Assembly (NCBI GenBank): GCA_025594325.1
Contig: JANHCV010000013.1
Location: 682,001-746,000, forward strand
Direction of reading: 5' to 3'
Length of the DNA: 64,000 bases
From: Blastocladiella emersonii ATCC 22665
Taxonomy: Eukaryota > Fungi > Blastocladiomycota
Position numbers and translations under genes: made by a program. A model generated the notes under the pieces. That model saw only the letters and a program-made list of their open reading frames with translations, had not been told where the DNA came from and did not search any database. Of this stretch, positions 5,855-40,474 are shown in pieces. Numbering within the stretch: position 1 is the first letter of the stretch; each line of letters opens with the position of its first letter.

Positions 5855-7831
5855 ATGAAACTAGAGATCCCGGAACTTATAGAGCGAGTGCTTGTCTACG
5901 CCGTGCAGCTGTACGACGATCCGAATGACGTCGCGGGGCTCATGCAGTACGCGCGGGTGCTGCGCGAGGCGCTGATCCCCGGCGTTGCGCGCGCAATTCT
6001 TAAACGGTCGCCCGAGCTGACTATCGACGCGGCAAGCGCTCGCGGCGCCGTTGGCGTGCTTGAAAAGTGGCGCGTGTCCAGCCTGCCGCTTGTCTACTCG
6101 TTCAATGCCATCAAGGACGCACACGAATCTTCGCTTGAAACCATCGAGTGGTGGGGTCGCTCCGGTCTTCCGATCCGTGACCCAAGCTTCCCGAATAGCT
6201 CGACTTTTGACTTGTTTGATCGGCGCTATGGTGTTTCGTTCACGTCCATTTTCTTCCCTGGCTACGTATGTCAGCGAGACGGTAACGATGGGGTGATCTT
6301 GCTCATATCATCACCGGGCTTGTAGACGCCGCTTCCTCGTTGGGAAGGCGATATCCGTAATCTTGAACAGTCAATTCCCGATGTCGTTTCTTCTATCCGG
6401 CTTGGAAATGCACCCGAGGTTTCGATCCGCGACCAGCACATTTCGTTTGCCGCCGTCGCAGCACTGAACGAGGCCATGGCGAGCCAGCCGGACGCCCTCC
6501 GCTCCTTTGAGCTTTGTTCATGCGCAGTGGACTTTCCTCGCTTCTCACTGCTTCAACTCCCGGCCTCGCTTACCCATCTCCAGTGCAGCTCTATGTGGAG
6601 CTCGAAACGGATCGATTACAGCTATTTTGCTTGGTGGTCGCTGCCGCAGTCCCTCGAATCGGTCTCCATTTCTGGGAGAACCTTTTGCGGATACGTGCCG
6701 CTCATTCTGGGCGCGCTTCCCGAAAGCCTCGCATCTCTCTCCATCACGAATACCACGTTAACCTCGTACCCAAAGCGGGACTCGATGCAGGCCAACTTGG
6801 ACTCAATGCGGGGCGACTCGGGCTCAGACTGGGTTGAATCGGACTCGAGCTCAATCGGATCCGACTTGGACTTGATTGGCTCGGGCTTGATCGACTCGGG
6901 CCTGATCGACCCGGGCCTGATCGACTTGAACTTGATTGACTTGGAATGGCTGGGGTCAGACGCAGTCTTGGACGAACCAGACGCAGGCTCCGGCTTGGAC
7001 GCAATGGCCAACACAAACATGTACCTTTCTCAAAGTTTGATTTCGTTCCCAAGCGGACTCAGCAAATTGTCGCTTGCAAGCTGCGACATTAGCGATCGCG
7101 ACTTCGGCTGTCTGTTCCCTGGTCTTCCTCGCGGCCTCGTTACCCTGGATCTCAGCTGCACTCGCCTCACGGCATCACATCTCAGTGCGAGCTATCACCA
7201 TTTGCCAGCAACGCTTCGTTCGCTTGACCTCTCGTACACCTTCCTAGGGTACGCAAGCAACAAGGAAGTCCTTGGCTGGTCTTTGCCATCTGGACTTGAG
7301 AAGTTGAAGTTATCGTACGCCACTTCAATAGCCTTTCCTGAGACCAAGGCTCGCGGTCTGCGCCTGCTGGATCAACTGGAAATCCAAGCCCTCGTCGCTG
7401 ACTCGATCCCGCCCAATCTCACCACGCTTGTCTTTGAACAGGAGTGGCAATACGGCTCCATGGTCACCGCGTCCATCTTCGGTCCACGCTTGCCTCAAAC
7501 GCTCCGCGAGCTCTTCTTTGTAGGATCCACCATGGGTCCCGCGGGCATGCGCATCCTCGCCAAGTTTATCCCGCCCCAGCTCACGTTGCTCGGCTTGAAT
7601 CAAGCAGACCTCACACTCGAGGCTGTGCGCGCCCTTGCCCCCGCGTTGCCACAGACGCTCAAAAATTTGCGCTTGTACTCGAACCCGATCGACGACGAGG
7701 GCGCTGAGCTGCTCGCCAAGTACCTTCCGGACAACCTTGACGGCATCTACTTTGACGACGTGGACGCCACTGAAGTTGGCGAAGCGTTACTCCGCGCCAA
7801 GGTGAAGCCTGGCGGTCATTTTGGTGGGTGA
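5855..7831 (+). CDS. F-box-like + ankyrin-like repeats + RNI-type LRR protein, ~638 aa; join(5855..6265,6326..7831)
   Basis: The N-terminus LEIPELIERVLVYA is followed by IDAASARGAVGVLEKW and LETIEWWGRSGL ankyrin-like units. A GTATGT...TAG intron joins the two ORFs in frame. LPxxLxxLxLxx LRR repeats (e.g. LPQTLKNLRLYSNPIDDEGAELLA). Paralog of 28898-30544 and 14848-15490. Confidence 0.82.
6872..6946 (+). repeat. Five tandem 15-bp units inside the LRR gene encoding LIGSG/LIDSG/LIDPG/LIDLN/LIDLE
   Basis: Units read directly: ttgattggctcgggc, ttgatcgactcgggc, ctgatcgacccgggc, ctgatcgacttgaac, ttgattgacttggaa. Confidence 0.9.
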
Positions 7832-7920
7832 GCGAGAGTCGACATGCGTGATCTGTGCTGTGATCTCGAGCAGCCGAATAGGACAATTGCCTTTCGTTTC
7901 TGTCACTGGACCCGGAATGA

Positions 7921-8067
7921 GACTCGTACTGGAATGTCATCTTCGGTCGCACCGGCCTCGCGATGGCCGCCTACGTCCATTTCCAGGTGCCCGAGACCAA
8001 GGGCAAGTTGCTCGAGGAGATGGACGAGGTGTTCAAGTCCAAGTCGTCGTCGACCATCAAGGCCTGA
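7921..8067 (+). pseudogene. Orphan C-terminal fragment of an MFS sugar-porter (last TM + PETKG motif)
   Basis: Translates to DSYWNVIFGRTGLAMAAYVHFQVPETKGKLLEEMDEVFKSKSSSTIKA*. PETKGxxLEEMDxxF is the sugar-porter C-terminal signature. An in-frame TGA lies immediately upstream and no other exons were found. Confidence 0.8.
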
Positions 8068-8461: not shown

Positions 8462-10875
8462 ATGAAACCTCATGAAGTATATGCAACGTGCTCCGCGCGC
8501 TTCACGGACCTCCCCGCCGAGCTCGTGGCGGCGGTTCTTTGTCTTGCCGCCCCTCGGCTTGCCGTCCCGCTCGTGTCGGCTGGTCTCGCAGCGGTTGACA
8601 CGGCGACGCTCAACCGGATCTGTCGCCGTTACGTGCCCGTGCTGCCCAGCCCCCTTGCCACAACTGACGACGAGTGCTGCTGGTGCGATCCTCACGACCC
8701 CAATCGGCGACTTTGCTACAGCAATCGTATCGACTCGCTTGCTCGTCCGTTCTTCACGCTCCACCAACTTGCAATTCTCTTCGCAGCACAGGGTCGTGTT
8801 GACCATCTCCGCATCGTGCTCAATGCGCTTAACGAATTCGCGCACATCAACTGCCACCACATGCGCCTTCGTCACTGGCTCAAAATTGACCCGGAATGGC
8901 GCGAGAATGTTGATGCTGCCCTGTGGGATTGCGCGCCAGAGGAGGAGTTTGCATTTGAAACGGACCCTCATCATGACGAGCTTTGGCCGACGTTTCTCGA
9001 GTGTTTAGTGCTTGTCGCGTTGAAATGGTGGCGGCCCGAAGTCCTTGCAGTGATTGAATCGCCACGTTATGGACTGAACAAGGCGCGCTTCGTTTCATGC
9101 GAGTGCGACACTTACGCCAAGCTCGGTGTGCTCGCGTGCGACCCATCACTTCCCGCGCCCCTCGTGATTGATACCCTTTCTTGGATCATCGGCAATCGAG
9201 GGGAGCATCTCGTTCGACACAATCTGCTTTCGGTAACCTCCTTGTACGTTGGAGCCTGCAGCGTCGAGTGCACGGTCCAGCTGATGCGCCAGTTTGACGA
9301 TTACGAGCATTACATGGCGCTCGACTCCGACGAGTATGACACCCTAGTGTCAACGGTGCTCGGCGGCGCATCACTCGATACGCTCCTTGAGTCGGGCGAT
9401 CTGGGAGAGCACAAGGAAGAGTTGTTGACGCTCGTGGAATGCGACGCCATCGAGTCAAACAAATTGTCGGATCTCCTGCTTGGCTTCATCCGCTCCGGAT
9501 CTTCCAATTTGCACGGGTTTGCTCGCAGGATCTCCTCGCGTGAAGTTTATTCCCAGGGTACGTCCCCGAGACTTGTCCAATTCACGATCTACGTCACACT
9601 AATCGTACGTTGGGTGTAGCCATCAACCTTGCCATGGGACTCAACTACCTCGGGTGCTCGAGGGCGGACGGCTTTCATTTCGACGAGCTTGCCTCCTCGA
9701 CTTGTAGCGATCCCGACGCCTCGGCTTACCTTCCATTGGCGGCTCCTGCCCGCGACCTTGACTCCCTTATTTCCGAGGTAACCTCGATAGTCGAGCTGGC
9801 TATGCGGAACGAGATGCGCTTGTCCGCGATCCTCTGTGATTGGACAATGACTAAATTCGCCCGCCTCGGCGCCCTCAACGACGTGCTTGCGTTCACGATC
9901 AACTACCGCGGTTCTTTGGACTTGTTTCGCGACTATGACGATACGCTCTCACCCAATTCGGAGTACACGCGGATTGATCTCGAGACTGGTCTCGCAGTTC
10001 CTTATGGACACTTGCTCGTTGGGCTTCTGTGCGATCCGAACACCGCCCCAGGCATTCTCCCATTGCTCAATACTTTTTACTCTCACGAGCACCCTCGTGC
10101 GCACTGGCACCTGTACAAGTTGCTTCTGCCCGAGGTCCGGCGCGGAACTAGCCGCTGGAAGCCGAGCGCCGAGGCGTACATGGATTCGCTCCCTCTTGTT
10201 CATTTCACGCAAGCCGACTTGCGCGAGGCTCCACCAATACGTTTACTCAAGTCAGCATTCGACCCGATGACCGACGGCGAGGATTTGCCCTACAAGGAAC
10301 CGTCCATCCACCCGATTGCTCGCGCTTCTGTGGGGTCAGACGCGCCGTCGCTGCCCACCGACCTCCCCGATTCGTCGTGGGCGCCATGGCAGTACGCCCT
10401 TCACACGGTGCTCACGCAAATCCCGCGCTTCACGCTTACGGCCGATGCGATCCCGGATGAGGTTCGTCGGATGTTGTTCTCACGCGAGGCGCTCTGCCGT
10501 GCGGACTTTTTGCGCCGCGGCGAGGCCCCCAGCGGTGTGTCTGGTCCAGGCACCGAGACGGCGTGGATCATTGAGCGGCTGTACCACGCCGCGCCCGAGG
10601 TCTTGATCAACGATCTGGTGCGGGTAAGCGTTACGAGTCCCGCTCTTGTCTGGCGCATGCTCCCGCGCGGTGCCTTGGACGGGCTTCGCTCACCAAAGTG
10701 GCTTCTTGCCGCCGCGTCCGTGATCTTTGACCGTTGCCGCGACAAGGAGACGTCCATGCCGCAAGCGCTCACTGATCTGGTTGCTGCAGCGGTTGAGACC
10801 GCTCGTTCGGCCGAGTTCCTTGGTTTGTACCACGCCGAATGCGAGCAGTGCGGGATTCTCCCAATACACTTTTAG
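8462..10875 (+). CDS. F-box-like family A1 protein, ~783 aa; join(8462..9557,9620..10875)
   Basis: N-terminal FTDLPAELVAAVLCLAAPR. Family motifs LAILFAAQGR, ALKWWRPEVL, LLCDPxTA, PWQYALHTVLT and AWIIERLYHAAP. A phase-1 GTACGT...TAG intron (with CTAAT branch) joins the two ORFs in frame. Confidence 0.85.
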
Positions 10876-14400: not shown

Positions 14401-14800
14401 GGTCGAACCGCACGAGCTTGATCTCGGAGAGCAGTCGAGCACTCGGCAGAATCGCGTGGATCTACACTCGCAGAGGATCTACACACACAATACGTGAGCC
14501 GCGAGTCGACCACGTCGCTGCTTCATGAGTCAAAGGTACCTTGGCGTGATGCGCCGATGGGCCGGCCGGATCCGGTCCACCACCCAGCACAGCGTGAGCT
14601 CGACCAGCTCGTGCGACATGTCGGCGGCGCCCAGCCGCTAAGGCACGTTCTGGTAGATCTTGCAGGTCCGAGTCGGAGCTCGCGCGTCACGCCCTCGACG
14701 TTGTCGACGAGCGTGTCGAGGAACGGGATCATGACGAGGAATAGGACGTTGAGGAAGCTGAGGATCGGGTCGGCGCGAGATACGAGGGCAGCTGGATCAC
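11450..14800 (-). pseudogene. Possible heavily degraded cyclic-nucleotide-gated/HCN-type channel relic
   Basis: Frame-broken pieces in roughly the expected order: S1-like W(D)VALIASNLMIPVVV (~14295-14345), S4-like IIGLLKLVKDAR (~14140-14175), S5-like LFEVLLLVLLSAAVIG (~13975-14020), weak cNMP-like segment (~12900-13040), second S2-like IIVIDILIR after a TAG acceptor (~11735-11760). Motif resemblance only. Confidence 0.3.
12115..12290 (+). repeat. Diverged partial third copy of the dispersed repeat at 32.4-34.1 kb and 48.5-50.3 kb
   Basis: gcggcgaacgagcgcatggagggggaggtgggggcggtgcttacgg and agggcgtgccgag match 49570-49660 (ggggcgaacgagcgcatgaagggggaggtgtgggcggtgcttacg, agggcgtgccgag). Confidence 0.75.
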
Positions 14801-14847
14801 GAACTGAAATACTCGTACGCGACTGTAAATGCAGACCATCCGACCGC

Positions 14848-15490
14848 ACCTCGAGGTTTGCGCAAGATTCCAGCCCTCGAGATTCAAACTCTCATTGCTG
14901 ATTCGATCCCGCCCAGCCTTGTCGTTTTCAACTTTGCGCAAGAATGGCAAGATGGCTCCATGGTCATGGCAGGCCTCTTCGGCCCACGCTTGCCTCGAAC
15001 GCTTCGCGAACTCTCGTTTGTGGGATCTTCAATGGGCACTGTGGGGATCCGCATCTTCGCCAAGTTCATGCCGCCTCATCTCACAATGCTCAACTTGGAT
15101 CAAGCTGATCTGACAGACGAGGCTGTGCATGCGCTTGGCCCTGTCTTGCCGCAGACACTCAAGGAGCTGTACATGCACTCGAACCCGCTTACCGACGAGG
15201 GAGCCGAACTGCTTGCCACGTACCTTCCCGACAATCTTGACGGGATCTACTTTGACGACCTGGACACGACTGAAGTCGGTGAGGCTTTTCTTCGCGCCAA
15301 GGTTAAGCCTGGAGGGCGGTTCGGCGGGGGAAAACGTGTCAATATTGATCTTGAGCTTGAATTATATGTTGCTATTCACGAAAATCTCGTCGCTCGACCT
15401 GAAATGAGACTTGATGGGCGGTTGTTTGGAATGCGAGCGCGTCGCGATCACAGAATGGCTGGCCACTCGCACGCCACCAACCTTGCATAG
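14848..15490 (+). pseudogene. 5'-truncated C-terminal copy of the LRR gene at 5855-7831
   Basis: LEIQTLIADSIPP...LPDNLDGIYFDDLDTTEVGEAFLRAKVKPGG aligns residue-for-residue with the C-terminus of 6476-7831. There is no F-box or ankyrin part and no ATG. Confidence 0.85.
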
Positions 15491-17091
15491 GATGCTTAAG
15501 GGTTTGAGAGCTAAAGTGACGGCAAGCGAACTCATGCAAAATCGTGTCACGTCACGAACAGCAGGAGCACATCATCCCATGGACCAAGTATTGCGCGGCA
15601 GCGACACGGAAGTCCGTCGCTTCACCGCTCCTTAAACATGTCCCTGTCTGTTTTTCTTCCAAAGATGGATGAACGGCCCAAGCGAGAGCACTCTCCCAAG
15701 AAACGAGCCACGCGATGCGCCACAGCACGTGCGCTCGTGACCAGTCGCTCTCACACTTGACGGTCATGCGCGCCAGCCTCGCTCCTCCACCTTGCTCCGC
15801 ACCACCATGCAAACCGATAAAGCGACTCCATGCAATGGGGATTCGAGTTCGGACTCGCTCCATCTTGCTGATTTGCCGGCCGAACTCGTTGGTCATCTCC
15901 TGCGCCTGGCGGTGCCTCGAACCGCCATCCCGCTCGCGACGGGTGGCTTTGCCGAGATTGCGGCTGAATCCGACACCCAGTGGGTCTGGCGGTGCACCTG
16001 CATGCTCCGGCCTGATCTATGCGGCTGGGGCGAGCTACATTTGTGCGACGAGGACGATTGCCCCTGCGGCGAGCACAGCTACGGCGGACCCATCGACCTG
16101 CGCGAGGCAATGCCGTTGACGCCGTACCTTTGTCACCTTGCTTGCCACGAGCGGACTGATGCGTGGTTTCGCGAAACGGAGCGGGTCTGCTGGTATACTT
16201 CGGAGGAAGGAGACGTGTTTGACGAGCAGACCGTTACCTGCCTTGTTGCGCTCTTCTCGGACAAGACTCTTCCCGCTCTTTCACCCGATGCCCTTGCTGA
16301 ATGGGCAACCAACGTTGACTTGACCTTCGAGGAGAACGGGTACTTTGATCCAGCAGAGCACGCAATCACGCCTCGCTTTTTCGTTCTGCGCCAGCTCGCC
16401 ATGGTGTTTCCGGCTCAGGGCCGGATCGAGTCGCTCACGCTCGTACTGGACGCGCTCGCACGCCAGCCCTCCGCATCGCATGACCTGTCTCTCAGTTCGT
16501 GGTCATCCTTGGACATTGACTGGCGATCCCGCAACCAGGTCAACCGGCTGTTCTGGGATACGAATTGGAGTCACGACATCAGGTCGTTCAAAGACCGACT
16601 CAGCCCTCGCTTCTTCTGCTACCTTGCGCTCGTCGCGCTCAAGTGGTGGCGGCCCGAGGTCCTCGAACTTCTTAAACGACCCGAGTACGGGGTCCGTCGC
16701 GACATGTTCGCCCGCTTCCCTATCCACCCCATTGTCGAGCGTTCGTGCGATCCCTCGCTACCCGCCGATCTTATCGTTGCGACGCTTGCCTGGTTTGCGG
16801 GCGATAACGGGGAACACCTCGACCGCGAGGCAGCACCATCGCTTGCAGCCAGTCTTGTCTTCCACGCCAATTCAAACTGCACTGCCCAAGTCATCCGCCG
16901 GTTTGGTGCCCACTCGGACGTGCCGTATTACCACAATTATTACAGTAAAAGACTCGCAGCGGCACTGTTGGACGGGGACGAGGGCGCCTTGGAAGGGATT
17001 CTTGCGACGGGCAGGGTCGGCGACCACTTGACGACCTTGACCGAGCTGATTCACTTTGGTTTGTTGGATTACGGCCAGCTAGCGCGACTTA

Positions 17092-17106
17092 GGGCCCGTT
17101 TGGTTC
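17092..17106 (+). repeat. Left TIR GGGCCCGTTTGGTTC
   Basis: Exact reverse complement of 19528-19542. Confidence 0.97.
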
Positions 17107-17225
17107 CGGGGTGAATCAGGTGGATCAATCGATTTTACACGGTCCGGTGTTCACCCAGCTGAAACGTGGCATTTTCACCCCGTCGCGTTCATCGCGGCGT
17201 TTGGGTCGACCCCCGGATGAGCTGA

Positions 17226-17690
17226 ATGGAACCCTCGTCGCTGAATTGCCCGTCTGCTCGCCCCCGAAACCTTCAGGCTGTGCTTCCCGGCCTATATAAA
17301 CGCTGTTTTCCTTCGTGGGGCGGCTCGACCACCACCGGCGAGTACTCGCACCTCGAGCAGGACGGCAAGGAGTCTGGTGACGTGGAAGGTGTCGATGGTC
17401 AAGACGACGCGGCCCCCGCCAGCAAGCGCAGCCGCACTTCGGACAGCAGCTCGCGTCGCCTCTCGGACTCGGAATTCCTCATGGGCATCAAGGAGGTGTT
17501 CCAGAGCGTCGCGACCGCCGACTCTAAGCCCGTCCTGACCGCCGCACTTGAATGGGTCCAGGACGCGTACAACGACAATGAAGAGTACCAGATCGACGTC
17601 GCCACCCGCCTGACCGAGGATCAAGCGCTTCGCGTCATGGCCGTGTCCGAATCGAAGCGCAAGCGCATCCTCGAGATTTTCATTCAGTAG
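17226..17690 (+). pseudogene. Second ORF of the PIF element (Myb/SANT-partner-like), N-terminally truncated
   Basis: Acidic disordered stretch followed by a helical tail (TAALEWVQDAYNDN...QALRVMAVSESKRKRILE), convergent with the transposase. No ATG upstream of the linker and no Myb/SANT domain visible. Assignment rests on position inside the TIRs. Confidence 0.6.
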
Positions 17691-18003
17691 CTCACTCGCA
17701 CATGTCCCCCTCCCCTCGCGTTGCTTCCTGGCCTTGTTCTCGCCCATTTGTGTCCAATACATCTGGCTTTGTGTCCATCGTATCTTCAATCGTTACCCTT
17801 GGCTCGAAAATGACGCGACTCGTTGAGAAACGCGTGGTTCGCAAAGTGTCTCACACGTCACGTGATTGATCGACGCGTCTCCACCGATGCATTCTGACCT
17901 CAGCGACGCGTCAAATCATCTAGAATCGCTTATATAACATTATAGTACTTGAAAAATCAGTATATTACAGCATGCATGCGGGTACAACAATTATTTCGCG
18001 CCT

Positions 18004-19321: not shown

Positions 19322-19414
19322 GTTGTTTGAGGGCTCGAGAACACGATGCGTGAGGTTAGGTGTTGATTCGTTGCAATAAGTGCGGCTGCAAAGAGGTGGG
19401 AAAGATTTTATTGC

Positions 19415-19433
19415 GGGGGGGGGGGGGGGGGGG
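19415..19433 (+). repeat. G19 homopolymer in the right subterminal region of the transposon
   Basis: Read directly from the sequence. Confidence 0.9.
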
Positions 19434-19527
19434 CGTTCATCCAGCGGGGCGTTTGGTTCGCACGGCCGCTGAGATGAACGGGGGTGAGGTGAAACGTGGC
19501 AACTTTTTCAGCTGATCCACCTGATCT

Positions 19528-19542
19528 GAACCAAACGGGCCC
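19528..19542 (-). repeat. Right TIR
   Basis: GAACCAAACGGGCCC followed by the TTA duplication. Confidence 0.97.
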
Positions 19543-22490: not shown

Positions 22491-22837
22491 CGCCCGAGAA
22501 CGCGTGCTCTCCTCAGGCGCAAAGTTGACAAAGGCTCTGAATCATGAAAGAAGAGCAGGCGCAAGTATTCTCAACTGTCGAGTCCGGGAAGTGCGACGCG
22601 GCGAGGGCAGCGGATCGCGGGCGGGCCAGCTTGAGGGCGGCGACGGCAAACTTGGCTGGAAGGTCTGGAAAGCATAAATCCAGCATGCTGATGTTCCGCC
22701 GAATGGTTTGCATGGAGTCTTACATGGAACTGGCGAAAGTGTGGGCGGTGCTGGCGGGCGGCGAGGAAGGAGAACGGACGCCACTTCGGCGGTTTCCACG
22801 CTTCAGCTCTCGCTCCCCCCTTCCCTCTCCGCACCCT

Positions 22838-28421: not shown

Positions 28422-28897
28422 GGATGTGACGAGTATCGCAAGATTTGGAGTCCGAGGGCGGGAGAAAGAGCGCGTCACCGGCCACGCGGCGCTCAACGCT
28501 CCCTTTCCTCCCTGGGACTGGGGAATTGACAATGTGTGATGAGACTTTTCTGGGGCAAGTATAAATGTTGCGTTTCGAAGACCAAGTTCGTTGAAGGTAC
28601 TGTCAGGGATCAATTCACGCGGCCGGCCGTGACCTGGCGGTTGTCACCTCGCCGCGGTCTCAGACCATGTCGGTACACTCAACGAGAAATGATTTCCAAA
28701 TCCTCGCAACATCAACCAACGACTGGCGGGAACGAACGCTTCCAGCTCACGCCGGACGCGTCGATTTATCATGTGATGCCCGCGTAAGGCTGGTGCGCCG
28801 TTGGCATGTGGCGCAAGTCTCGCGCCGCCGCTCGCTTCGCTTCGACCGCATGTAGCACCTTACCACTTTGACTAGGACCACGTAAACTTCATGCAAA

Positions 28898-30544
28898 ATG
28901 CTCAGGGCTATTCATGTGCCCGAAGTCCTCGAGCGGATTCTTGTTTATGCCATCAAACAGCACGGCGACCCGGCCGACGCGGCGGGGCTCCTCGAGTACG
29001 CGCGCGCTCTGCCGCGGGCCCTGGCCCCGCGCCTTGAACGAGCGCTCTTAGATTTTACGTCGAGTCTTTCAATCGACGGGGCGACGGAGCGCGGCAATGT
29101 TGTGGCCCTGAAGAAGCGGTCCGCACTTGGGCTCTCGCTCACCAGCTGCTCCATGGTCGCACTGAGAGCCGCCATTGCCGAAGGCCATCTCGAAACACTA
29201 GAATGGTGGCGCGCTTCGGGTTTGCTTCATGCCGACGAAGTCCAAGATCTTGTCGATTACTACGAAGACCACACCACGAGTCCGCACGCGGCGCTGGGAA
29301 TGCCTTATCGCGACGACGATGACAACTTCTGCCCAGCGGCTGAGGTCGACGAAGGTATCGATGAGCTCTGCCTCGATATCGCGGCAGGTAGACGTGCAGA
29401 CCTCTACCTTGACACTTGGTCCATCTCCATGGCGGGAATCAACGCGCTCAGTGCCGCCATGGCGAACCCTCTGCAGGCGGTCCGAACCGTTGATTTTCGT
29501 AACTGCACCATCGACCTCCCTCGTTTACTCGCTCTTCGACTTCCGTCAACGGTGCGCAAGGCCGAATTCAATGCGCACTGGATCAGACAGCCGCCACCAT
29601 CGTCTCTCGCGGAATCGACACCAATGCGCTGGCCACCGGGTCTCGAATCGCTCGTGATTGGGACACGGCGGATGTCAACTGCCATCCCCTACCTCTTCCA
29701 CTCTTTTCCCGCGACGCTTCGCTCACTCCATATCGGAGGCGTCGACTGTGATGATCTTAAAATCCTTGAAATTGTTGACAAGTTTCCCCCATTCCTCAAA
29801 GAGCTCGATCTGCCATCCAGCTCGACTCGAGTTGGGTTCATGGCTGTCATCGCTCGACTTCCAGCAACGCTTGAAAGCCTTTCAATCGGATCGTATCCCA
29901 TGGTTTGCACCGGGGACGCACGTGCTTCATTATCGCTGCACAACACTCAAGGCAGAGTTCCAGTGCTTCCGCAGCTGCTTACATCGCTGGAGTTCGCAGG
30001 TGATGAGCTCGACGTTGAGTTGATCCACACTCTTGGCATTATTCCGCGCTACTCGCTTCGGAAACTTTCACTGCGCTTCAAAGAAGTCAACCACGACGCA
30101 ATGTTGGAGCTTGCCCGCGTCTTTCCGCCGAACCTCGAGGAATTAGTCGCCCGCTGTTGTTATACGTCCCGCGCTGGCATTATGTCGCTCATTCCAAGCC
30201 TTCCCCGAACGCTTACCGTGCTCGATCTCATTGACTCGGACATCGGATGCGAGGGCGCTCAGCTCCTTGCTCAACATCTGCCGCCCCGCCTCAAAGAGTT
30301 GCTGCTTCGCTCAACGAACCTCGACGACGAGGCCATAGAGTTCTTGGCACTCGCGCTTCCGCAGACTCTCGCTGTTCTCAACCTATCCCTGAACACAATC
30401 ACGGATGCCGGTGCATACTTACTCGCCACTTGCTTGCCGCCGGGCATCACCCAGCTCGGAATGTCGGGCAACGTCATTTCTGACAAGGCCGAGGCCACAC
30501 TCCTCGCCGCCGTACCGCGGGTTTCGAACATCCGACACTGTTGA
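28898..30544 (+). CDS. F-box-like + ankyrin-like + RNI-type LRR protein, 548 aa
   Basis: IHVPEVLERILVYAI and AAIAEGHLETLEWWRASGL; repeated LPRTLTVLDLIDSDIGCEGAQLLA-type LRRs; paralog of 5855-7831. Confidence 0.85.
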   Translation: MLRAIHVPEVLERILVYAIKQHGDPADAAGLLEYARALPRALAPRLERALLDFTSSLSIDGATERGNVVALKKRSALGLSLTSCSMVALRAAIAEGHLETLEWWRASGLLHADEVQDLVDYYEDHTTSPHAALGMPYRDDDDNFCPAAEVDEGIDELCLDIAAGRRADLYLDTWSISMAGINALSAAMANPLQAVRTVDFRNCTIDLPRLLALRLPSTVRKAEFNAHWIRQPPPSSLAESTPMRWPPGLESLVIGTRRMSTAIPYLFHSFPATLRSLHIGGVDCDDLKILEIVDKFPPFLKELDLPSSSTRVGFMAVIARLPATLESLSIGSYPMVCTGDARASLSLHNTQGRVPVLPQLLTSLEFAGDELDVELIHTLGIIPRYSLRKLSLRFKEVNHDAMLELARVFPPNLEELVARCCYTSRAGIMSLIPSLPRTLTVLDLIDSDIGCEGAQLLAQHLPPRLKELLLRSTNLDDEAIEFLALALPQTLAVLNLSLNTITDAGAYLLATCLPPGITQLGMSGNVISDKAEATLLAAVPRVSNIRHC

Positions 30545-31144
30545 CCAGGACGGCCGCGTAACATGTACTTTGATCCGTCGACTCCCAGCTGTTCATCTGG
30601 TTCAAAAGCGAGCCATTCATTCATCATCAGTTCATGGCGAGCAGCGAAAGTCGTTCTTCACCAAAATTCAATATATTTTCCGCTCCCGATTCCAACAAGC
30701 ACTCTGGGAGTGCAAGTGGCAAAGCCGAAAGACATCGTGACTGGCTGCTTGCGCGCATGAGCTGAGCGAGAGGCCCCGCTGACTGGGGCGTTTGTCGCGA
30801 TCCAGGTCTTGCACACCCATGAGCTTCGTTCATGTCCTAACAGAGGCAGTCAAGTGATTTACACAGGGATCAAGGACGCCAATATGTTAAGGCGACGAAC
30901 TCGGGCCAGTCATCAAGTTCAACCCAAGTTCGCCCACCGATCGTGCTACTCGTTCATCGCTTTCGTCTCCACGAGCTGGTACACACGACTATCGAGAACT
31001 GGGCTTCACGCAACTGAACGCCAAGGCGCGTAATTGACAAATATCACATATGCACCGTAACTTAAGCTGTGAGCGCATTAGGAAACGGGAGATCGCGAGG
31101 TCGGTCTAGAACGAGCCTGATGCGACTCAGTCCGCTGGCAAAAA

Positions 31145-32152
31145 CTAGCACGGACCTGCCCGCCACCCAAACTGCTCACGCATGTCGCTCTCCTGCTCCG
31201 CGAGATCGTACAATCCACAATCCACAGGAGCGGCCCGAATCCGGCGCACTTTGTCGAGCTGCTCGAGTTGCATTTTGGGCATGCTTGTGATGAGCGCTTC
31301 TACTCGATGATTGCGCGGCATCCCGAGAAACACGCTGTCAGGAAGCATGCGGGTGAGCATGGGTGAAACTGGCCAGAGCGCGACAAAGAGATCCATGGCG
31401 AGGCCAGACAACTTGACCCGCATCGCGTTGACAATGAAACCCGAGGTACCGCCGCTATAGCTGGTCGCGCAGCATGAGTTGCTGGACTCGTGGCGGAGAG
31501 CCGACTCATGAGAGTGCTTGACGGCTGCGAGAAAAGCAACGAGAAACTTGGTCGTGGCCGCGTCCATCTCGACGTCCTCCAGTAGCAGGGGGAACGCGTT
31601 GCGCCACACGGACTGGCACGAGAGTGGGCAGTTCGGGCACACAGTGAATCCGGGCGCGGGCGGGATGACAAGGTCGGCGTGTGACGAGAAATAGGACGCG
31701 AGCAGCGCGCCAAGCAGCGGCGCTGCGAGCTTTGCATTCCGAACGATCGCGAGCGCCCGATCCCGATCTGTTGTGAGAACCGTCGTCGTGAGCCACGAAA
31801 GCGCGTGCGAGACGGTTGATGACGGCGTGCCGAGTTGGTCGGGACTGGTCAGGAGCAAGGCGCGATATGACAGAGAACTCATCGGTTCGAGACGCGAGCG
31901 GCTCGGCCGGCGAAAGCAGCGCGGTGATGCAATCGAAGCGCTTGGTTCCGCAATTATCGTTGGTCATGTCAAAGACGTTGAGCCAAATGCGGTCAAATGT
32001 GTCGGGCGTTTCAGCAACACCATGGCCGGGGAGAGCCGCGCGAGCTGACCCACGGCGGCGGCGAGCTCGGGCGGAAGGTTGGCCAAGCTCCTAGAACGCA
32101 TGTTGGGCGGTTGACGATCGTATTGCATGGAGTCTTTCGTGGTGTGCTTCAT
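31145..32152 (-). pseudogene. Internally deleted, frameshifted copy of the A2 gene at 38146-40474
   Basis: The F-box start (MKHTTKDSMQ...LANLPPELAAAVGQLA) runs within ~25 nt into exon-2 homology (DTFDRIWLNVFDMTNDNCG vs GTIDRIGLNVFDDTNDECG), so ~1.3 kb including the intron is missing. A second frameshift lies near 31860. PGFTVCPNCPLS is shared. Confidence 0.85.
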
Positions 32153-32394
32153 GGCAGTGAAGTGCTGGAGTGGAACGCAAGGGGAAGAAGCTATGATTTC
32201 AGCCACGACGAACGCCACTCGGCTCGGTCACCCGGGCCACGTGCGTCTGTTCGGCGCGTCGGCGGAATCATGTTTCCTAGGACGATGTCGGGCGTGAAAT
32301 GGGCTTCTGCGGCATTCAGAGATGCTTAGCGGCGGCGTTCCACATGACATAGATGAGCTCCTGGCGATGTGAGCGGCCATCATCATGTCCTCGT

Positions 32395-34150
32395 TGGTCG
32401 AGGGTGAACCATTTGAGCGAGCAAGACGGAAATCAATTTTTCCATCTGTCTCCTCGCGGTGATAATTAAATATCTCGCACCGGTCACGCGAAAGTCAGCC
32501 GATCTGAGCGCGACGCGTCGCTTGCCTCCCGGAATCAATTTTCGTGCCACGCGGCTCGCTGTTTGCTTCCCGCGCGTTTGCTCTCCCACTAACACGCGCA
32601 CGTTTTTTGATATTCATGTATCGCACCTGATTTACTCGCACCTGCTGCAAGTTCACGGAGGCTTGCTGCAGCGACAGCGGGCGTCTGCTCTCGCACACGC
32701 GCCCGCCCGCTCGCGCTCCTTCCCCTTCGCCGCATGCCCTGTACCATGCAATCTCTCTCTCAACTACTACATGCAATGCGACATGACAACCATCCAAAAC
32801 CCCGCGCTCGGCCGCCTACCGCGGCGCGGCGCGCGACTACACGTCACTCGACAACCGCAGCCCGATCCGCTCGTTCTCAAGGGGTCGTGAGGTATCCTGG
32901 TGCGCTGCCGCGTGGCGCGACCGCCCCTCTCTCTCCCCTCGTGTAGATGCCCCCCGGTGCGGGCCTAGTACCCTCCTGGCCTAGTTCTCTCTCTCGGCAC
33001 GCCCTCTGCGGCACGAGCCCTCGCCGTAAGCAAGCGTAAGCACCGCCCACACCTCCCCCTTCATGCGCTCGTTCGCCCCGACGCATGCTGCGGCGGGCCC
33101 GTGTGTGGCGCGGCTGGCGGGGGTCTCGGCCGTTGCGGAGGTGGCTAATGAAGGGAGGCAAACGGTGTGGCGGCCGAGTAGGTGGCGGGTAGTGGCCCAT
33201 GGACCACTGCGTCTGTTGGGCGGAGCGGCTGGACCGATCTGAAAATACTACCCGTCGTACCGAAACGCCGCCCGCGCTGCACCGGGGGCACCCTGTACGC
33301 CGGTTACCCACCCACCCACCAAGTTCAAGCGCGACGCGAGGCTCTCGATTGCGGGAAGCAGCAGGTACGGCGCCGCCGATGCTCGCTCGTCTTTGTGATG
33401 ATCGCCTACCGACTGACTCACGACGATTCTCGCCCGTCGTGTGTGTAGATCGCATCGCCCTCATCCCTATCCACTACTCTACTACGACGCGCGCAACCGG
33501 TCCGGCCGCGCGGCAGTTTCGCGTCGTGCGGCGGCGGCCGCCAGGTCAACTTCGGCCCCCATGGTCGCGTTCAAGTTCAAGGCGTGTTCGAGGTACCGCA
33601 TCTCTGACCTGCATCCGCCGCTGCCGCGATCAGGACAACTCACCCTCTCCCTCGCACCCCCGTAGAGCCACCCATCTCCTCCAAGGTTCCGCGACGCGTG
33701 CCACTACACCAGATCGTGTGTGTCGTGGTACCGAGCCCCCACCGTCCCGCTCGCCGTGACCGACCGACGCCCTCAAGAAGCTCAAGCGCCTGTACGTGCC
33801 GATCGAGCGGATCATCGAGCCCAAGAACGGCGGCGACACAAGCTCCTCGGGACCAACTTCCACCGCCGCCAGTACATGTGCAGATCGCCGGCATTCCGCA
33901 TCACGCACTCGCCGCCGCCGTCAAGCCGCTGTCGCGGTCGGTCACGCTCAAGCTGGGCGACTGACACGCCGCGCCCAAGTCGATCCGCTGCTATCGACCT
34001 CGGTTCGTGGTCGATCGAGGAGGAGGTCAAGTTCCAGACGGCCATTGACGAGCAGCTGTCAATCGTGCCCCTCACGATAATACATCGCAAGCCCGTCCAT
34101 CCGTGACGCCTTTCTTGTCCCACCCACTTCGGGCGATGCACGGCGAGAGG
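32395..34150 (+). repeat. Copy A of a ~1.75-kb inverted repeat (decayed multi-exon gene plus promoter-like head)
   Basis: Reverse complement of ~48500-50310; ORF 32877-33464(-) matches 49179-49826(+); same 73-nt GTACCG...TAG intron (33593-33665). Confidence 0.92.
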
Positions 34151-34346: not shown

Positions 34347-37300
34347 CTAAACCGAGCCGCGCGAAGCCGCGGCCTGCCCAGGCACCGCCGGGTAGACGGG
34401 AAGGATAAGCGCGCGCTTGAGGAGCGGGCCGAGCTCTTCGTACCCTTGCGCGCGCACTCGCATGCTTTCGGCGGCGGAGGGGACGGTAGAATCGGCGTCG
34501 GGTAGCGCATGGAACGGGAGCTGGAAAATGGCCGTTGTGAACACCGGCGACAGCTTGCGCACCAACAGTCCCGCGTCAGAAAGCGAAATGCCACAAGGCG
34601 TCATGATCCCATCGCGCTCGTGCTCTGGAATCGTGCGGTCAAACGGCGACTGAGCCGCGTCCTCTTTTTTCTTTGCGAGAGCAACGGTGCACTCAAGCGC
34701 GGGTGTCGGAGCCATGCCTGGACCAGCCGACGGGATAAGCACCGCTTGGTCAAAGAAAATGAGCGCAAGGTATTTGCCAGCGAGGCTCTGCAGCGTGACA
34801 AGCTCAACACCAGAAGCGTAAGCGTCAAAGAGCTCTCGCGTGAGCTCCACCATGCGCAAGGGAGTGGCTGGCGCGGGCGAAGGTAATTGCACCGACGCCG
34901 TCGGGGTCATCACGTGAATCTGATCCTGCGCTGTTCGGACAGCCGCGGCAATCGAGTGCTTCAGGAGCGGATTCGAAGATGCGAGCACAACACGGCGGCC
35001 GATGCGGGGAAGCGGCAAGAAGAGCCCGACCTTGCTCGCCACCACGCCCATGATGCGGTGAAGGACGAGATGTACGCGCCCTTGCTTGCGAGAAACCTGC
35101 ACGTTGGCGATGATGGCCGGCGAGGTCACGCGCATCGACTGGCGCACGCCGTCAACAAGGAGCGCCACAGCACCACACGCCGTGCGCATGTCCGCCTCCG
35201 ACTCGAGCGTAAACTTGGTATCTGAACCAGGCCGGAACTGAAGCATGAGCTCGACCGAGTCGTCCTTTTCAGTGACGTGGCCAACAGCGAGCGGCCAGTC
35301 GCGCCGATCAGCAAGACCAGATTGAATTGGCGACGGGCGGATCGCCTCTAAGAGGGCGGTGTTGGGTTTCCCAGTGACCGGCGTGAGCTTTGCGGCGGAG
35401 AGCGGAAAGAGTTTGCCGCCGACAAGCTCGCGCTTTGATCCGTGAGGAATCTCGCGGTGCACGCCAATCTTGGTTCCAGGAGGGGCATCCTTGATGATCA
35501 TCGCACAGACGAGAGTCCGAACACGCACGCGAGGATTGGAGCCATGAATCGGTTCGACGGAAAGCGTATCAATTCGAAGCGGGTTGCCCGGCCAGCAAAC
35601 TTCAAGCGCAAGGAACGGCACCAGCGAAAGCGACTTTTCGTCCATTGGAACGTCCAGCTCGATGAGGTACTGGTCCGTCGAGTAGGCATCCTTGAAGAAT
35701 CCGTAAGCAACGGCCGATGCGACGAGATCAAGCGGCATGACGACCTCGTCGGGATCCGGGCTCTTGACGGGTGGCTCAAGCATGCTGAACAAGAAGCTGA
35801 CGATGTCCTGAGGCCACGGCGCCGTCGTGATCGGCGTGGAGCCCGACCAAACCAGGCGCCCAGACGCGACAGCAATCGCCAAAAGCTGGACAAAGACACC
35901 CCGCGTGAATGCGGTGAGACCTAAACAGGAGGGAGTTACTCAGTGGACGAGAGCAAGAGACAAAACTAGCCGTACCATGCGAAATAAGCTTCGAATAATG
36001 GCTGGTGCAAGTGAGCAGCGCGCGTTGCAGAAAAGGCGACTGCCCAAGCGCGGTTGGCACTGAAGGCTGGGGGAGCTTCGTAAACGTGAGATGGCGCACG
36101 GTACGGTCGTCGCTTGGGTCAAACGCCCACGAAAATGGCTGAAGACACGCCTCCGTCGCCTCGTCGGATTCCTGTTTGGTAAGCGTGACGCCAAACAGCG
36201 ATGGAAATGCCTCATGTGGGAGGAGCGTGTGCAGGAGGAGAAGCTTGTCCCAATCATCCGCCGCGTCGGCCTTGGGCTGCATAAAGAAGGCAAGCAAGCG
36301 GGAGCGGACGCGGGGATCGTCATTGTGGCGGAGCAGCAAGGTGCCGTGTACGAGGAGAGGAAGGAGGTCGACGTCTTGCATGAGATCGTGCGTGTTCACA
36401 ACATCGAAGCGCATCGCGGGGTCGGCGGCGAGCTCCTCCATCGCCGCGACCGCGTGGCCGCAAATGAAGGACACATAAACTCGGAACCTGTTGCCACGCA
36501 TGGCTGGACGGAGCGCACCGACCCAATCGCAAAGCTCGGCGAGAATAGCTGCCTCAGGGAGGGCTGGGCGAAGAAGCAAATCGAAGGACTCGCCCGGGAG
36601 ACGGTCTGCGGCCGCGGCATAGTACGGCACGTCGTCGCAAGAAATGAGAAGCATCGTCGGGTTAACGACCGCGTCTTGCCCCGCACCGTCGCGACGCGGG
36701 GTCGTGAAGGCGCCGGTGGCTGCAAGTCGCTCGTGGTTGATCATCATGCGAGTAGCTTCGGCGCGCTTGAGCACACCGCGGTGCTGCTCCTGCAACCGGT
36801 CCATTGCCTGCGAAGCCGCGCGTGCAAAGACCTCGCTCGAATCGGCGCCGTCGTTCGCCTGGTGGAATCGGTCCCGCTTAGCGAGCAGGGCCTCGACGGA
36901 CCAGTCCACGGCCAGCCAGCCGCGCCAGCATCGGCGGAGCTCGCGAAGGGTCGCTTCGTTTGTGACACGAAGCGGCGAGTCGGCCGGAACGTTGAGCAGG
37001 TCGAGTTCGAGGCACGCGCGCAGCTGGGTGTCCCAAAAGTCGCGGACGTCGGGATCAAGGACATGAGAGTACCACAGTTGGCCGACGTAGCGAGCGAGAG
37101 CGTCCGTGTCAAGGTCGTTCGGAAGCGTATTGGCAAAAGCGTGAAGGATCAGAAAGTTCCGCGCAAGCACCTCGGGCTGCCAGTCGTTGAGCGTGAACGA
37201 GAGCGTTGCGGTGGCACCCTTGACCGCGGCTTCGCACACGGTCCGTGCGACCTCGGCCAGGTCGCCGCAGCCGCACAGGAGCGCGCGCAGCTCGGGCAGC

Positions 37301-37500
37301 GCACGCGAATCGTGGTACATGAACAGGTCGCGCGGCGGGTGGCGACGGTACGGGCGGAACGAAGCGACGCGGCTGCCCCGGAACGGCGTGCGGCACGTCA
37401 GCAGTGAAGGAAGCGCTACGGCAGGTTTCTTGACCATAATAGCAGATTTCGATGCATTGCCGCCAGTGGCGGGCTTTTTCGTTTTCTTTTTAGCCTTCAT
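34347..37500 (-). CDS. DUF4470-type protein, ~1032 aa, intact; complement(join(34347..35920,35976..37500))
   Basis: ALLCGCGDLAEVART...FTLNDWQPEVLARNFLIL...GQLWYS is the DUF4470 pattern, and FDVVNTHDL follows. A phase-1 GTACGG...TAG intron joins the ORFs. The C-terminus LKRALILPVYP is shared with the other copies. Confidence 0.82.
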
Positions 37501-38145
37501 TGCAACAAGTGGTCGGCGAATTTGCGCGAAGTGGGCGCGTCGCCAGTTCTTGCCCAGGAGAACCCCTGAATGAGCGAGTCGCCCGCACGTGACTGGCCTG
37601 CTACTCTGATCGAGGCCGGCCGTGTGGCGCAACGCGCTTTCGGGCCACTACAAATCTGGGCAAGAATTTCCATTTACGTGTGTTTTTCAAAAAAATGCGT
37701 AATCAATCCAATCCCGTCTGCTCACATCGTGGACGGGCGGAACCAAGTCGGACGTCTGTGTTCCCAACAGCTACGACCAGTTACAGATGCTTGCCCCGTT
37801 TCACTTGGTCCTGAAAGTGAGTTACCACGCAAGTTTGCAAGTGGGAAACCACATGGACCATCGTTGGAGGCCGTGACTGCAACCACGGGTTGCGAAAACT
37901 GACCGCGTCGCGGCGTCCGACCTTTCCGCTCGCTCGTTTCGCACGACATATCGCTTCCCCTCGACTTTTCTGCCCACTCGCTACAAAACTCGTTGCTGAG
38001 TCGCACGTATCCTGGACCTCGCGGCGGCAGCCCTCCAGTTCGAAGACATCGTCCCGCGATCAAGTGCCAAAACACGCCAAATGTCGAGTACAACAAGTAG
38101 AATTCAGATGTACTAATAGATGGCAGCGTCTCCAATCCAGTCTGC

Positions 38146-40474
38146 TCACGAGGTCGGATCCGGTTCCGCCTTCCGCCGGCCAAACCGCTCCCGCATGTCA
38201 CGCTCCTTATCCACAATCTCTTCCACACGAGCACCAATCTGAATAGCGCGAATCCGTTTCAGCGAATCGAGATGCTCGAGCTGGATTCCTGGCGTGCTCA
38301 TAAGAAGCGCTTCCAACCGACCATTGTTTGGGACCCTGTCGAATACACCGTTGTAAATCAAGCCGGTGAGCATGGGCGAGACGGGAAGCAGCGCGCAAAG
38401 GAGATCGATAACGAAGCTGGGCGATTTGACGCGCATTGTCTCGAGAATGAAGTAAGAGGTCGTATTGCCTCTGGGGACATCGACACAGCACATTCTCTTG
38501 GACTCGTGAATAAGCGCCAGTTCGTGTGAGTGCTTGACCGACGCAAGATAAGCGCTGAAGATCGGGAACATGTCAAAGTTGGCCCTGAAGGGTTTGATGA
38601 GTCGCGCGAAGACCTTGCGCCACGCGGGCTGGTACGACAGCGGGCAGTTAGGGCACACGGTGAACCCAGGCGTGGACGAGAAAACGAGATCGTCGTGCGA
38701 GGAAAGGTGGGCTGCGAGCATCGCGCCAAACATCGACGCTGCAAGGTTTGCGGCACGCACGATTGCGCTTGCGCGAGCGTATTCCGTCGTGTAGACCGTG
38801 ACCGTGAGCCAGGAAAGCGCTTGCAAAACGGTGGACGAGGGAACGCCAATTCGGCTAGGATTAGTTGGGAGCAGGCGCGTGGCAACAGCGAAAGCATCAA
38901 GTCGCGTAGCAGCCGGCTCGGGCAGAGAAAGCAGCGCGGCGATACACTCGAAGCGGGCGGCTCCGCACTCGTCGTTGGTGTCGTCAAAAACATTGAGCCC
39001 GATGCGGTCTATAGTTCCAGGGGAGGCAGTCGTGCGTGCAAGGTGGACCAATGTGTCCATAAGCGACGGCTGCGGTTGAAAGTAAAACCCGTTTGCCTCA
39101 AGCAGGCTCTCCGAAAGACTAAGAACGCGGCGAGATCAAGTGTGAGGGCAGGAACAGCGCGGAGCAACCGCGGAGTGCTGACGTACCATCAATAAGAATG
39201 TCGTCCCACAGCGCGCCATATGGAGCCAAGCCGCTGCAAAGCAAAGCGACATCAGCTTTTTCGTTGGATGTGAGTGCACAAGCAAGGGCAACCTTGAAGC
39301 ACTCCACGCCAACCAAGCCCAAAGGGATAAGTGTGAGAACGTCGGAAATAGAAGGAAAATGATTGACGTAGAGGCCGGTCATTTTTTCCACAAAGCGATT
39401 GCGATCAAGCTTGGCCAGGTCCGCCTCGACTTGGTCAGGGAATCTCGTAACAAGGAGCGCAAGCGCGGCCGGATGGTACAATGCGATTGCGTGCAGTGCC
39501 GTTTCCGATCCTGATCTCGAGTCGTCCAACTTGTCACTTGACCATCCTCGCGCATACAGCCATCCAACGATGCCAGCAACGCTCTCGCTCGAAGGCGGAT
39601 GCATTCGGAGGGCAAGCAAGAAAATACAGTTGATCCCAGGTTGCGCTGACAGGACCGCGACGAGCGCGGCCTCATTGACGGCGTGTTCCGGGCGCAAGAG
39701 TAGTTGAAGCGAGTCGAATTGCCAGTACGTGGTCGCGGTGAATGCGAGCACGTCTGTGAAGCGCGGCGTCCGATTGAGTTGCTGGAACGCATTCGCAACG
39801 TCTTCCGTGTTGAAGGAGGTGTACGTCATGCGGCGGAGGTCCATGAAGGGTACCAGTTTCAACCAGTCGGACCAGCTGAGAGATGCAGTAAGCAGCTGTG
39901 GCCATTCTTTGCTGGCGTACGTGAGAAGCTCTTCCAAAAAGGCCGTGCAGCCCGCCGCGGCTGCATGTGCCGCGAGGAGGACGGTGACCGCAAGCGGGTG
40001 CCGGTTTAGCTGGCGAAGATCGGCGGCATCCGCGCGAGCAACGGCAGAAAGCAAGTCAAACGTCGTGTTACCGCCCACGGCATGGGTTCGAATGAACGCG
40101 AGCAGCACGCGCATCAGCGAGTCCACACGGACGCGCGCCTGTTCACGTCTAGCTGACACGTACGGCCAGCTGCGAAGATGCCCGGTCGAGTACAGTGCGC
40201 GTGACGTCGAGGACCAAGTGCTGCGGGCAAGTTTGGAGTTGTCGCCATAGTCGGGTTTGAAGTTGTTGTCGAGCCGAGAAATGAAGCCGATCGCCCAAGA
40301 CGAGAGAAAGTGCGGGTTAGACGCCATTGTGTATGTAGCACGGGAAGCGAGGACCAAGGCTGGGCGAGGCTCCACGAGTTGGCCCACGATCGTGGCAAGC
40401 TCGCGCGGAAGGTCGGAAAGACCCGGCGGCCGCATCGTTGAAGTGTCTAGGTTAGATTGCATAGAGTGTTTCAT
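38146..40474 (-). pseudogene. F-box-like subfamily A2 gene; exon 1 40474-39187, intron 39186-39119, exon 2 39118-38146, with a 1-nt frameshift near 39110
   Basis: MKHSMQ...LSDLPRELATIVGQLVEPR. GTACGT donor and TAG acceptor. Adding one base at tttcgg^agagc gives VFRESLLE, matching FFRDALE of the 27054 paralog. This may be a real lesion or an assembly indel. Confidence 0.78.

Follow-up and report, generated by a model that had tools for sequence, protein, structure and literature searches.

The window, that is, the whole 64,000-nucleotide stretch of Blastocladiella emersonii DNA that was analysed, has a G+C content of 55-65%, and long spurious open reading frames (ORFs) are common in it and are seen on either strand. 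Between positions 5855-40474, ten genes or relics of repeated families are located by tblastn within the window. This number bears out the initial annotation, in which at least ten F-box-like-headed genes or relics were claimed for 35 kb, and the motif [DNEHSQ][LIVM]PxE[LIVM][LIVMA] occurs six times in the six-frame translation, compared with 0.63 +/- 0.91 occurrences expected from 30 shuffles. Of the ten, roughly half are broken. The several head families first described are reduced to two unrelated families, namely the A1/B superfamily (seven of the ten) and the LRR family (three of the ten). A1 and B are homologous over their whole length (hhalign 99.5%, E 4.5e-22, 442 columns) and share the same intron position and phase; on this profile comparison, they are a single superfamily. 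A relationship between the A1/B head and the LRR-family head was rejected (hhalign probability 0.1%), and one between the LRR-family ankyrin region and the A1 body was dropped, the match consisting of only 9 columns ('L..L.WWR').

The A1/B gene is composed of two exons encoding about 780 aa. Its product has a short N-terminal peptide that is conserved, a divergent head of F-box-like type and a body that is all-helical and weakly ankyrin-like. A1-1 (8462-10875, + strand) has an open frame, with exon 1 at 8462-9557, an intron at 9558-9619 (GTACGT...AG, phase 1) and exon 2 at 9620-10875; aligned with its paralogs, it has a gap of about 85-90 aa directly behind the head. In A1-2 (15807-20863, + strand), a transposon interrupts exon 1 of an A1 gene, while A1-3 (22838-25361, + strand) is intact-looking, with exon 1 at 22838-24209, a phase 1 intron at 24210-24273 and exon 2 at 24274-25361. 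On the - strand, B-1 (28424-26958) is exon 1 of a B gene with an open frame and the head DLPAELV; a recognisable exon 2 was looked for downstream and none was found. B-2 (40474-38146, - strand) is an intact-looking B gene that starts with MKHSMQS and carries the head DLPRELA; its exon 1 lies at 40474-39187, its intron at 39186-39009 (GTACGT...AG, phase 1) and its exon 2 at 39008-38146. The nearest AG (39070 or 39119) was rejected as the acceptor of this intron because it breaks the reading frame, and a frame-keeping scan led to the AG at 39009. B-3 (32255-31160, - strand) is a degraded copy that has lost most of exon 1 and carries in-frame stops; its head NLPPELA runs almost straight into sequence resembling exon 2. 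The seventh member is an eroded B relic (22776-22032, - strand) with about 31-35% identity to B-1.

The LRR-family gene has one exon encoding about 550 aa; a three-helix head comes first, followed by two putative ankyrin repeats and by RNI-type LRRs. LRR-family gene 1 (5855-7831, + strand) contains the head (IPELIERVL at 5867), ankyrin-like repeats and RNI-type LRRs (LRR_6 8e-7), and its reading frame is broken by a stop codon at 6323-6325 (+ strand). LRR-family gene 2 (28898-30544, + strand; LRR_6 5.9e-10) is an intact single-exon ORF of 548 aa, in which residues 1-57 form the three-helix head (the second of the two heads, VPEVLERIL at 28916), residues 58-130 form the putative ankyrin repeats and the RNI-type LRRs run through to the C-terminus. 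The third member is a relic (14798-15328, + strand) of only the C-terminal 177 aa or so, with 70% identity to LRR-family gene 1. The LRR_6 model (PF13516) exceeds its cut-off of 23.4 bits at both 28898-30544 (38.9 bits) and 6476-7831 (29.1 bits).

The insertion in A1-2 is a PIF/Harbinger transposon (17092-19542, - strand), with terminal inverted repeats (TIRs) GGGCCCGTTTGGTTC and with TTA duplicated at the target site (17089-17091 and 19543-19545). Its transposase ORF (18440-19321, - strand) matches DDE_Tnp_4 at 2.8e-11, so that all the class features tested, that is, a DDE_Tnp_4 transposase, TIRs and a 3-bp TWA target duplication, are present. The genome holds at least 40 copies of this element at 98-99% identity. 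A segmental duplicate lies 157 kb away without the transposon, the uninterrupted A1-2 site being found at C5:541898-541901, and a 100%-identical copy of A1-3 exon 1 lies at C5:544900-546654. The array evolves through duplication, both segmental and tandem, after which copies decay via transposon insertion, deletion and nonsense mutation. The birth-and-death turnover proposed in the initial annotation is directly seen in the empty-site duplicate, in the Harbinger element with its TTA duplication, and in the nonsense, deleted and truncated copies.

The A1/B head has a length of roughly 45 residues and the consensus LPxELvxxVlqLAxPRxAvpLA[ST]...W, of which L6, P7, E9, L17, P20 and W44 are at least 90% conserved among 30 paralogs. 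When the profile of these 30 heads was compared with 14 F-boxes that Pfam recognises in this genome, the two aligned in F-box register over 37 columns (hhalign 88%, E 2.9e-6), with a score of 30.35 that lies far beyond a null of 150 column shuffles (mean 8.3, sd 1.7, maximum 17). When 766 frames of the window were ranked with an HMM of the genome's own F-boxes, five of the six head-bearing frames came among the best 12, all aligned at the head. Moreover, in the ESM Atlas, A1 residues 18-82 lie nearest to an F-box cluster (0.93), and a Catenaria relative with the same head, reached via the B profile, carries the UniRef name 'F-box domain-containing protein'. The A1/B head is therefore considered F-box-like at the profile level.

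These same results count against another reading, in which the head, with no binding to Skp1, is a helical N-terminal module specific to the lineage (capping the repeat stack or docking some other partner) and the proteins are ankyrin-like/LRR scaffolds outside the ubiquitin system. This reading is possible, though clearly less probable than not, and several observations speak for it. First of all, the Pfam F-box models fail throughout: no head passes PF00646 or PF12937, by which the initial annotation had proposed to check the heads, and no window ORF scanned matches Pfam F-box or F-box-like at E<=1. A genome scan with PF00646 and PF12937 yields about 40 canonical F-boxes, none of which lies in the window or coincides with a paralog that was checked, and no Pfam F-box is found in the Catenaria relatives or the annotated Blastocladiella relatives. 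In addition, the A1/B head profile matches no PDB sequence, and the head helices of the A1 model (29-38, 44-57 and 63-71) reach a pLDDT of only 50-58, the least confident part of the model.

The LRR-family head also favours such a non-Skp1 module. Its model has helices at 7-20, 28-35 and 44-53 (pLDDT 84-91), and the Foldseek and VIA matches of residues 1-57 are generic three-helix units, with no F-box among them; its sequence pattern resembles, on alignment, that of its own downstream ankyrin-like repeats. Compared with F-boxes, the head gives a hhalign probability of 2% and a score of 14.5, which 2 of 150 shuffles attain; with 38 sequences, the probability is 10.6% (E 0.003), and the score of 17.75 stands just above a null maximum of 16.5. 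The F-box cluster comes only at rank 7 in the ESM Atlas (0.84), and matches of the head profile to PDB sequences are at chance level. Of the F-box-like heads originally proposed, those of A1/B hold up at the profile level and that of the LRR family appears only marginally F-box-like.

As for the bodies, the A1 body is modelled as all-alpha (AF2 pLDDT 72.6, pTM 0.72), and for residues 196-385 ankyrin domains make up most of the top 50 structural matches (VIA Z 5-6.3). At Z<=6.3 and Foldseek E>=3e-3, such similarities are weak and lie below the level counted as reliable for helical repeats. Pfam Ank models have no match in the window ORFs, and Foldseek searches of the A1 and LRR-family models against PDB give nothing at E<=0.001. 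The viral structural matches to the body are, in 50 of 50 cases, ankyrin or F-box proteins of giant viruses, mostly Pandoravirus, with a best E of 3e-3. In the LRR family, residues 58-118 superimpose on 2aja_B over 61 residues (VIA Z 6.1, rmsd 2.2 A), a Z that is under the caution level for helical repeats. What the initial annotation called an unrecognised body of about 700 aa is instead predicted to be an all-helical, weakly ankyrin-like repeat.

In the genome as a whole, the A1/B head profile finds at least 150 strong copies and 507 candidates, and more than half of the best 150 of the 507 head matches are located on two small contigs. The array is therefore one among many clusters of genome-wide families and not the special island first supposed. 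In protein searches, the exons were used one by one. The exon-1 ORFs of A1 and B gave no match in a word-index search, and an exhaustive search with the B profile gave 41 proteins; the 30 of these that were looked up are Blastocladiella and Catenaria proteins and one unnamed record. For LRR-family gene 2, the word-index search returned three paralogs from Blastocladiella, one LRR protein and nothing else. Among the relatives looked up, A1/B thus appears limited to Blastocladiella and Catenaria, and both families appear to be Blastocladiales-only. Since 41 library proteins, a few of them from Catenaria or unnamed, stand against at least 150 genomic heads, most A1/B copies seem to be unannotated and may be silent.

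The medians of pairwise dN/dS are 0.45, 0.48 and 0.39, with no value above 1, for copies picked for their open frames; by domain, the A1 head has 0.22 and the body 0.48. Because dN/dS is below 1, coding constraint has acted on the copies compared, which were selected for open frames. Most pairs are close to synonymous saturation (dS above 1.2).

This constraint bears on whether most copies are silent or decaying, the repeated family having little function at present and drifting in regions rich in transposons and prone to duplication. The broken half of the array, the scarcity of annotated relatives in both protein searches, the abundance of long spurious ORFs at this G+C content and an active Harbinger family that has struck the A1/B superfamily at least twice all agree with such drift. 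However, dN/dS stays well under 1, with the A1 head below the body, the intron position and phase have been kept between A1 and B, and head and body are both conserved between Blastocladiella and Catenaria, so that general drift is considered unlikely.

Two further readings concern what the proteins might act on. The first, built upon the adaptor reading, takes the array as a fast-evolving ubiquitin-based surveillance or defence set against viruses or parasites. The copy number, clustering and turnover recall the F-box expansions of nematodes and plants, the architecture is like that of the Pandoravirus F-box/ankyrin families, and dN/dS values of about 0.4-0.5 are above the level expected for housekeeping genes. 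However, pairwise dN/dS never exceeds 1, dS is close to saturation in most pairs, and no tie to a virus, a parasite or a known immune domain was seen; a defence set is quite improbable. The second, a secreted or competitive effector set, draws on family size and turnover only. A crude hydropathy check, made without a trained predictor, finds the N-termini polar and no signal-peptide-like h-region, the sole hydrophobic stretch within the first 35 residues being a head helix; the secretion suggested in the initial annotation is accordingly very improbable.

In summary, with a little better than even confidence, the locus is read as a cluster of two Blastocladiales-only families, in which the A1/B proteins are putative Skp1-docking adaptors of SCF and the LRR family has an F-box-adaptor-like layout with a head that is at most a candidate F-box. 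The A1/B family probably supplies target-choosing parts of the ubiquitin machinery. Its head would dock on Skp1 of the SCF (Skp1-Cul1) ubiquitin ligase, for which the genome has three Skp1 loci, its repeat body would pick the protein for ubiquitination, and every paralog would be a separate substrate adaptor; the LRR-family layout recalls the F-box/LRR and F-box/ankyrin adaptors. A bolder extension, that A1/B is a Blastocladiales-specific, mostly unannotated F-box-like/ankyrin-like adaptor repertoire of at least 150 and up to about 500 heads that serves fast-turnover recognition (of viruses, parasites or self/non-self), with the Pandoravirus F-box/ankyrin families as its nearest look-alikes, is improbable.

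If the A1/B heads do dock on Skp1, B. emersonii and Catenaria would carry a very large, hitherto undescribed set of ubiquitin-ligase adaptors. A fungal expansion of such size, with a head missed by Pfam and a body without a family model, would alter the gene counts and annotation of a model organism, and would offer a new system for studying how an adaptor repertoire grows and decays. The B. emersonii genome has 10,031 annotated genes, and the genome paper does not mention an F-box, ankyrin or LRR expansion (PMC9730499). A full-text literature search for F-box together with Blastocladiella or Blastocladiomycota found nothing relevant.

Large lineage-specific F-box expansions are known in nematodes and plants. 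Similarly, A1/B has hundreds of clustered copies, birth-and-death turnover and many pseudogenes, but its host is an early-diverging fungus, its substrate-binding domain is a different one and no evidence of positive selection was obtained. Like the Pfam F-box (PF00646, PF12937), the A1/B head is N-terminal, spans about 45 residues, starts with LPxE[LI] and has equal hydrophobic spacing and a W near the end; as in SCF adaptors, it precedes a repeat domain, and the profile-profile similarity is significant. It differs in falling under the Pfam thresholds, in a helix-2 region two residues shorter and in a conserved 'LAxPR' that replaces the usual 'Ldxxdl'. Legionella AnkB and the Pandoravirus F-box/ankyrin paralog families share the order of an F-box or F-box-like head followed by ankyrin or ankyrin-like repeats; the A1 and LRR-family models both align with the ankyrin portion of AnkB, and the ankyrin and F-box proteins of Pandoravirus are the bulk of the viral structural matches. 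However, with E>=3e-3 and Z about 5 the similarity is weak, no relation is found at the sequence level among the 30 proteins looked up from the exhaustive profile search, and the A1/B body, without a Pfam Ank match, is far more divergent. Finally, the LRR family resembles the FBXL-type F-box/LRR proteins such as Skp2 in that a helical head at the N-terminus precedes RNI-type LRRs (LRR_6), but its head is only a putative F-box, and two putative ankyrin repeats are inserted between the head and the LRRs.

The array is composed of ten members, which were mapped in the window by tblastn with the main ORFs as queries. The G+C content of the window DNA is 55-67%, so long spurious ORFs are common on both strands, and the length of an ORF does not by itself make a strong case for a gene. 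The LRR family, in which a head is followed by ankyrin repeats and RNI-type LRRs, is present at 5855-7831, 14798-15328 (a relic) and 28898-30544. The A1 genes are located at 8462-10875 (A1-1), 15807-20863 (A1-2) and 22838-25361 (A1-3), and the B genes at 28424-26958 (B-1), 22776-22032 (a relic), 32255-31160 and 40474-38146 (B-2). The [DN]LPxEL-type head motif occurs six times in the window against 0.63 expected from shuffles, and the LRR-family heads IPELIERVL and VPEVLERIL were found where the initial annotation had placed them. A PAS-guanylate cyclase gene flanks the array (3157-5535 (+); Guanylate_cyc 1.3e-60, PAS_9 1.4e-10). DUF4470 was recognised by Pfam (E 2e-13 to 4e-6) in four ORFs, 35776-37632 (-), 50708-51673, 54356-55576 and 57877-59133 (the last three +), which make up another clustered, multi-copy family next to the array.

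The A1 and B genes consist of two exons with one short intron between them, in phase 1 and conserved in position, namely 9558-9619 in A1-1, 24210-24273 in A1-3 and 39186-39009 in B-2, each of which is bounded by GT...AG and keeps the frame. An annotated paralog of 778 aa (P0041) aligns with both exons in all three A1 genes; the A1/B searches themselves were run exon by exon. The full exon 1 is homologous between A1 and B (hhalign 99.5%, E 4.5e-22, 442 columns), and the two form one superfamily. At the N-terminus, ahead of the head, each subfamily has a short conserved peptide of its own, which reads ME.DE.T.CN in A1 (for example 22838-22880) and M[KN]HSMQS in B (for example 40474-40454 (-)) and is also found in paralogs. 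The LRR family, a single exon of about 550 aa, is unrelated to the A1/B superfamily in head and body alike.

The initial annotation had proposed F-box-like heads and a Pfam test with PF00646 and PF12937, by which the A1/B head falls below the membership threshold. No Pfam F-box match at E<=1 was found in any window ORF, the two models, run on all six frames of the genome, gave about 40 canonical F-boxes, none of them in the window or at the inspected paralogs, and the PDB sequences searched with the head profiles yielded no F-box. A comparison within the genome was made by aligning 14 of its Pfam-positive F-boxes and setting them against 30 A1/B heads. The hhalign probability was 88% (E 2.9e-6) over 37 columns in the expected register. 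The score was 30.35; shuffling the columns of the F-box alignment 150 times gave 8.3 +/- 1.7 (maximum 17.0), and reversing that alignment gave 8.2. When the HMM of these F-boxes was run on 766 stop-to-stop window frames, five of the six head-bearing frames ranked in the top 12 and aligned at the head, none being significant individually. In the ESM Atlas, the cluster nearest to A1 residues 18-82 was an F-box cluster (0.93), which serves as a lead only. In Catenaria, one relative with a head that fits the B profile is listed by UniRef as 'F-box domain-containing protein'; Pfam found no F-box on it. Taken together, the hhalign result, shuffle null, HMM ranking, ESM Atlas and UniRef name make it fairly probable that the A1/B head is a divergent F-box homolog, though it fails the Pfam threshold.

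For the LRR-family head the F-box likeness is marginal: the hhalign probability was 2% for an 18-sequence profile and 10.6% (E 0.003) for one of 38 sequences, the latter score barely exceeding the shuffle maximum. The AF2 model, which is confident (pLDDT 83.6), has a three-helix unit at 1-57 and then ankyrin repeats at 58-130, the ankyrin part matching 2aja_B in VIA (Z 6.1, rmsd 2.2 A over 61 residues). Structure searches with this head returned generic helical bundles only, with no F-box among the listed matches.

The nonsense, deleted, truncated, eroded and transposon-disrupted copies described earlier are all present. In the first LRR gene the frame is interrupted by a stop at 6323-6325; in the B copy at 32255-31160 the head abuts exon-2-like sequence almost directly and stops are present; tblastn in the window showed one truncated LRR relic and one eroded B relic; and a transposon sits within A1-2. 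B-1 (26958-28424, -) ends in '...WEDIFFQCAG', while exon 1 of its paralogs ends in '...W[DE]DIL[VI][DE]GT'; no exon-2-like sequence was found downstream of it, and B-1 may be truncated or its second exon may have diverged. A short fragment resembling B exon 2 lies at 48378-48488 (+) (46% over 37 aa, in-window tblastn).

The transposon at 17092-19542 is a Harbinger element that carries a DDE_Tnp_4 transposase, has terminal inverted repeats of 15 bp and is flanked by a duplicated TTA target. At least 40 copies exist at 98-99% identity, so the family has been recently active. Window positions 15134-34123 have a segmental duplicate at C5:539940-572512, elsewhere on the same contig, with 84-99.6% identity and large indels; the duplicate is free of the element, and its two flanks meet at C5:541898-541901. 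Between 15134-25414 and C5:539940-547768, identity is 91% on the left side of the transposon site and 99.6% on the right, a jump that points to gene conversion or to a duplication with a mosaic history. Another copy, 99% identical, lies at C5:287740-290179 between the halves of a further B-subfamily gene (C5:286869-287726 and C5:290176-290769), that is to say, the element has struck the superfamily at least twice.

Pairwise Nei-Gojobori dN/dS shows coding constraint on the copies compared, with medians of 0.45 (A1), 0.48 (B) and 0.39 (LRR), values that neither show nor exclude positive selection at single sites. We would judge this constraint weaker than in usual housekeeping genes. Within A1 the head has 0.22 against 0.48 for the body. 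Most A1/B pairs are near saturation (dS >1.2), except one very recent pair (dS 0.024).

Across the 21-contig assembly of Blastocladiella emersonii ATCC 22665, exon-1 queries gave at least 78 (A1), 79 (B) and 155 (LRR) matches, and the search with the head profile, starting from 507 first-look candidates, gave at least 150 matches that were scored, each of them at E<5e-10. Of the 150 best head-profile matches, 80 fall on two small contigs that together account for about 8% of the genome, C5 (1.38 Mb, carrying the window at 682001-746000) and C6 (1.25 Mb); these contigs may be enriched for lineage-specific genes. When 1.84 billion representatives were searched exhaustively with the B profile, only 41 proteins came back; among the 30 looked up, 24 were hypothetical proteins of B. 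emersonii, 5 came from Catenaria anguillulae and 1 was an unnamed Logan record. On these numbers the superfamily seems to be confined to Blastocladiales, with most of its members unannotated. The B. emersonii genome paper is silent on it (PMC9730499), and our literature searches found nothing on it.

As for function, homology and architecture best support reading the A1/B proteins as putative SCF-type substrate adaptors, in which the head would bind Skp1, for which the genome carries three loci, and the repeat body would bind a target protein. The putative defence role is an overlay on this reading. The initial annotation had also considered a secreted-effector set, against which the N-termini speak, being polar and showing no signal-peptide-like stretch. 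The AF2 model of A1 exon 1 (487 aa; pLDDT 72.6, pTM 0.72) is all-helical. Three structure searches with this model point in the same direction, all weakly and below the tools' stated reliability levels, so that the body is best described, provisionally, as a 'divergent ankyrin-like repeat'. Foldseek against the PDB gave only weak solenoid matches (PPR, ankyrin, HEAT; E>=0.03), and in VIA, which is independent of Foldseek, ankyrin-repeat domains dominate the list for residues 196-385 (Z 5-6.3). In BFVD, the best 50 matches of the A1 model are all ankyrin or F-box proteins of giant viruses, mostly Pandoravirus (best E 3e-3).
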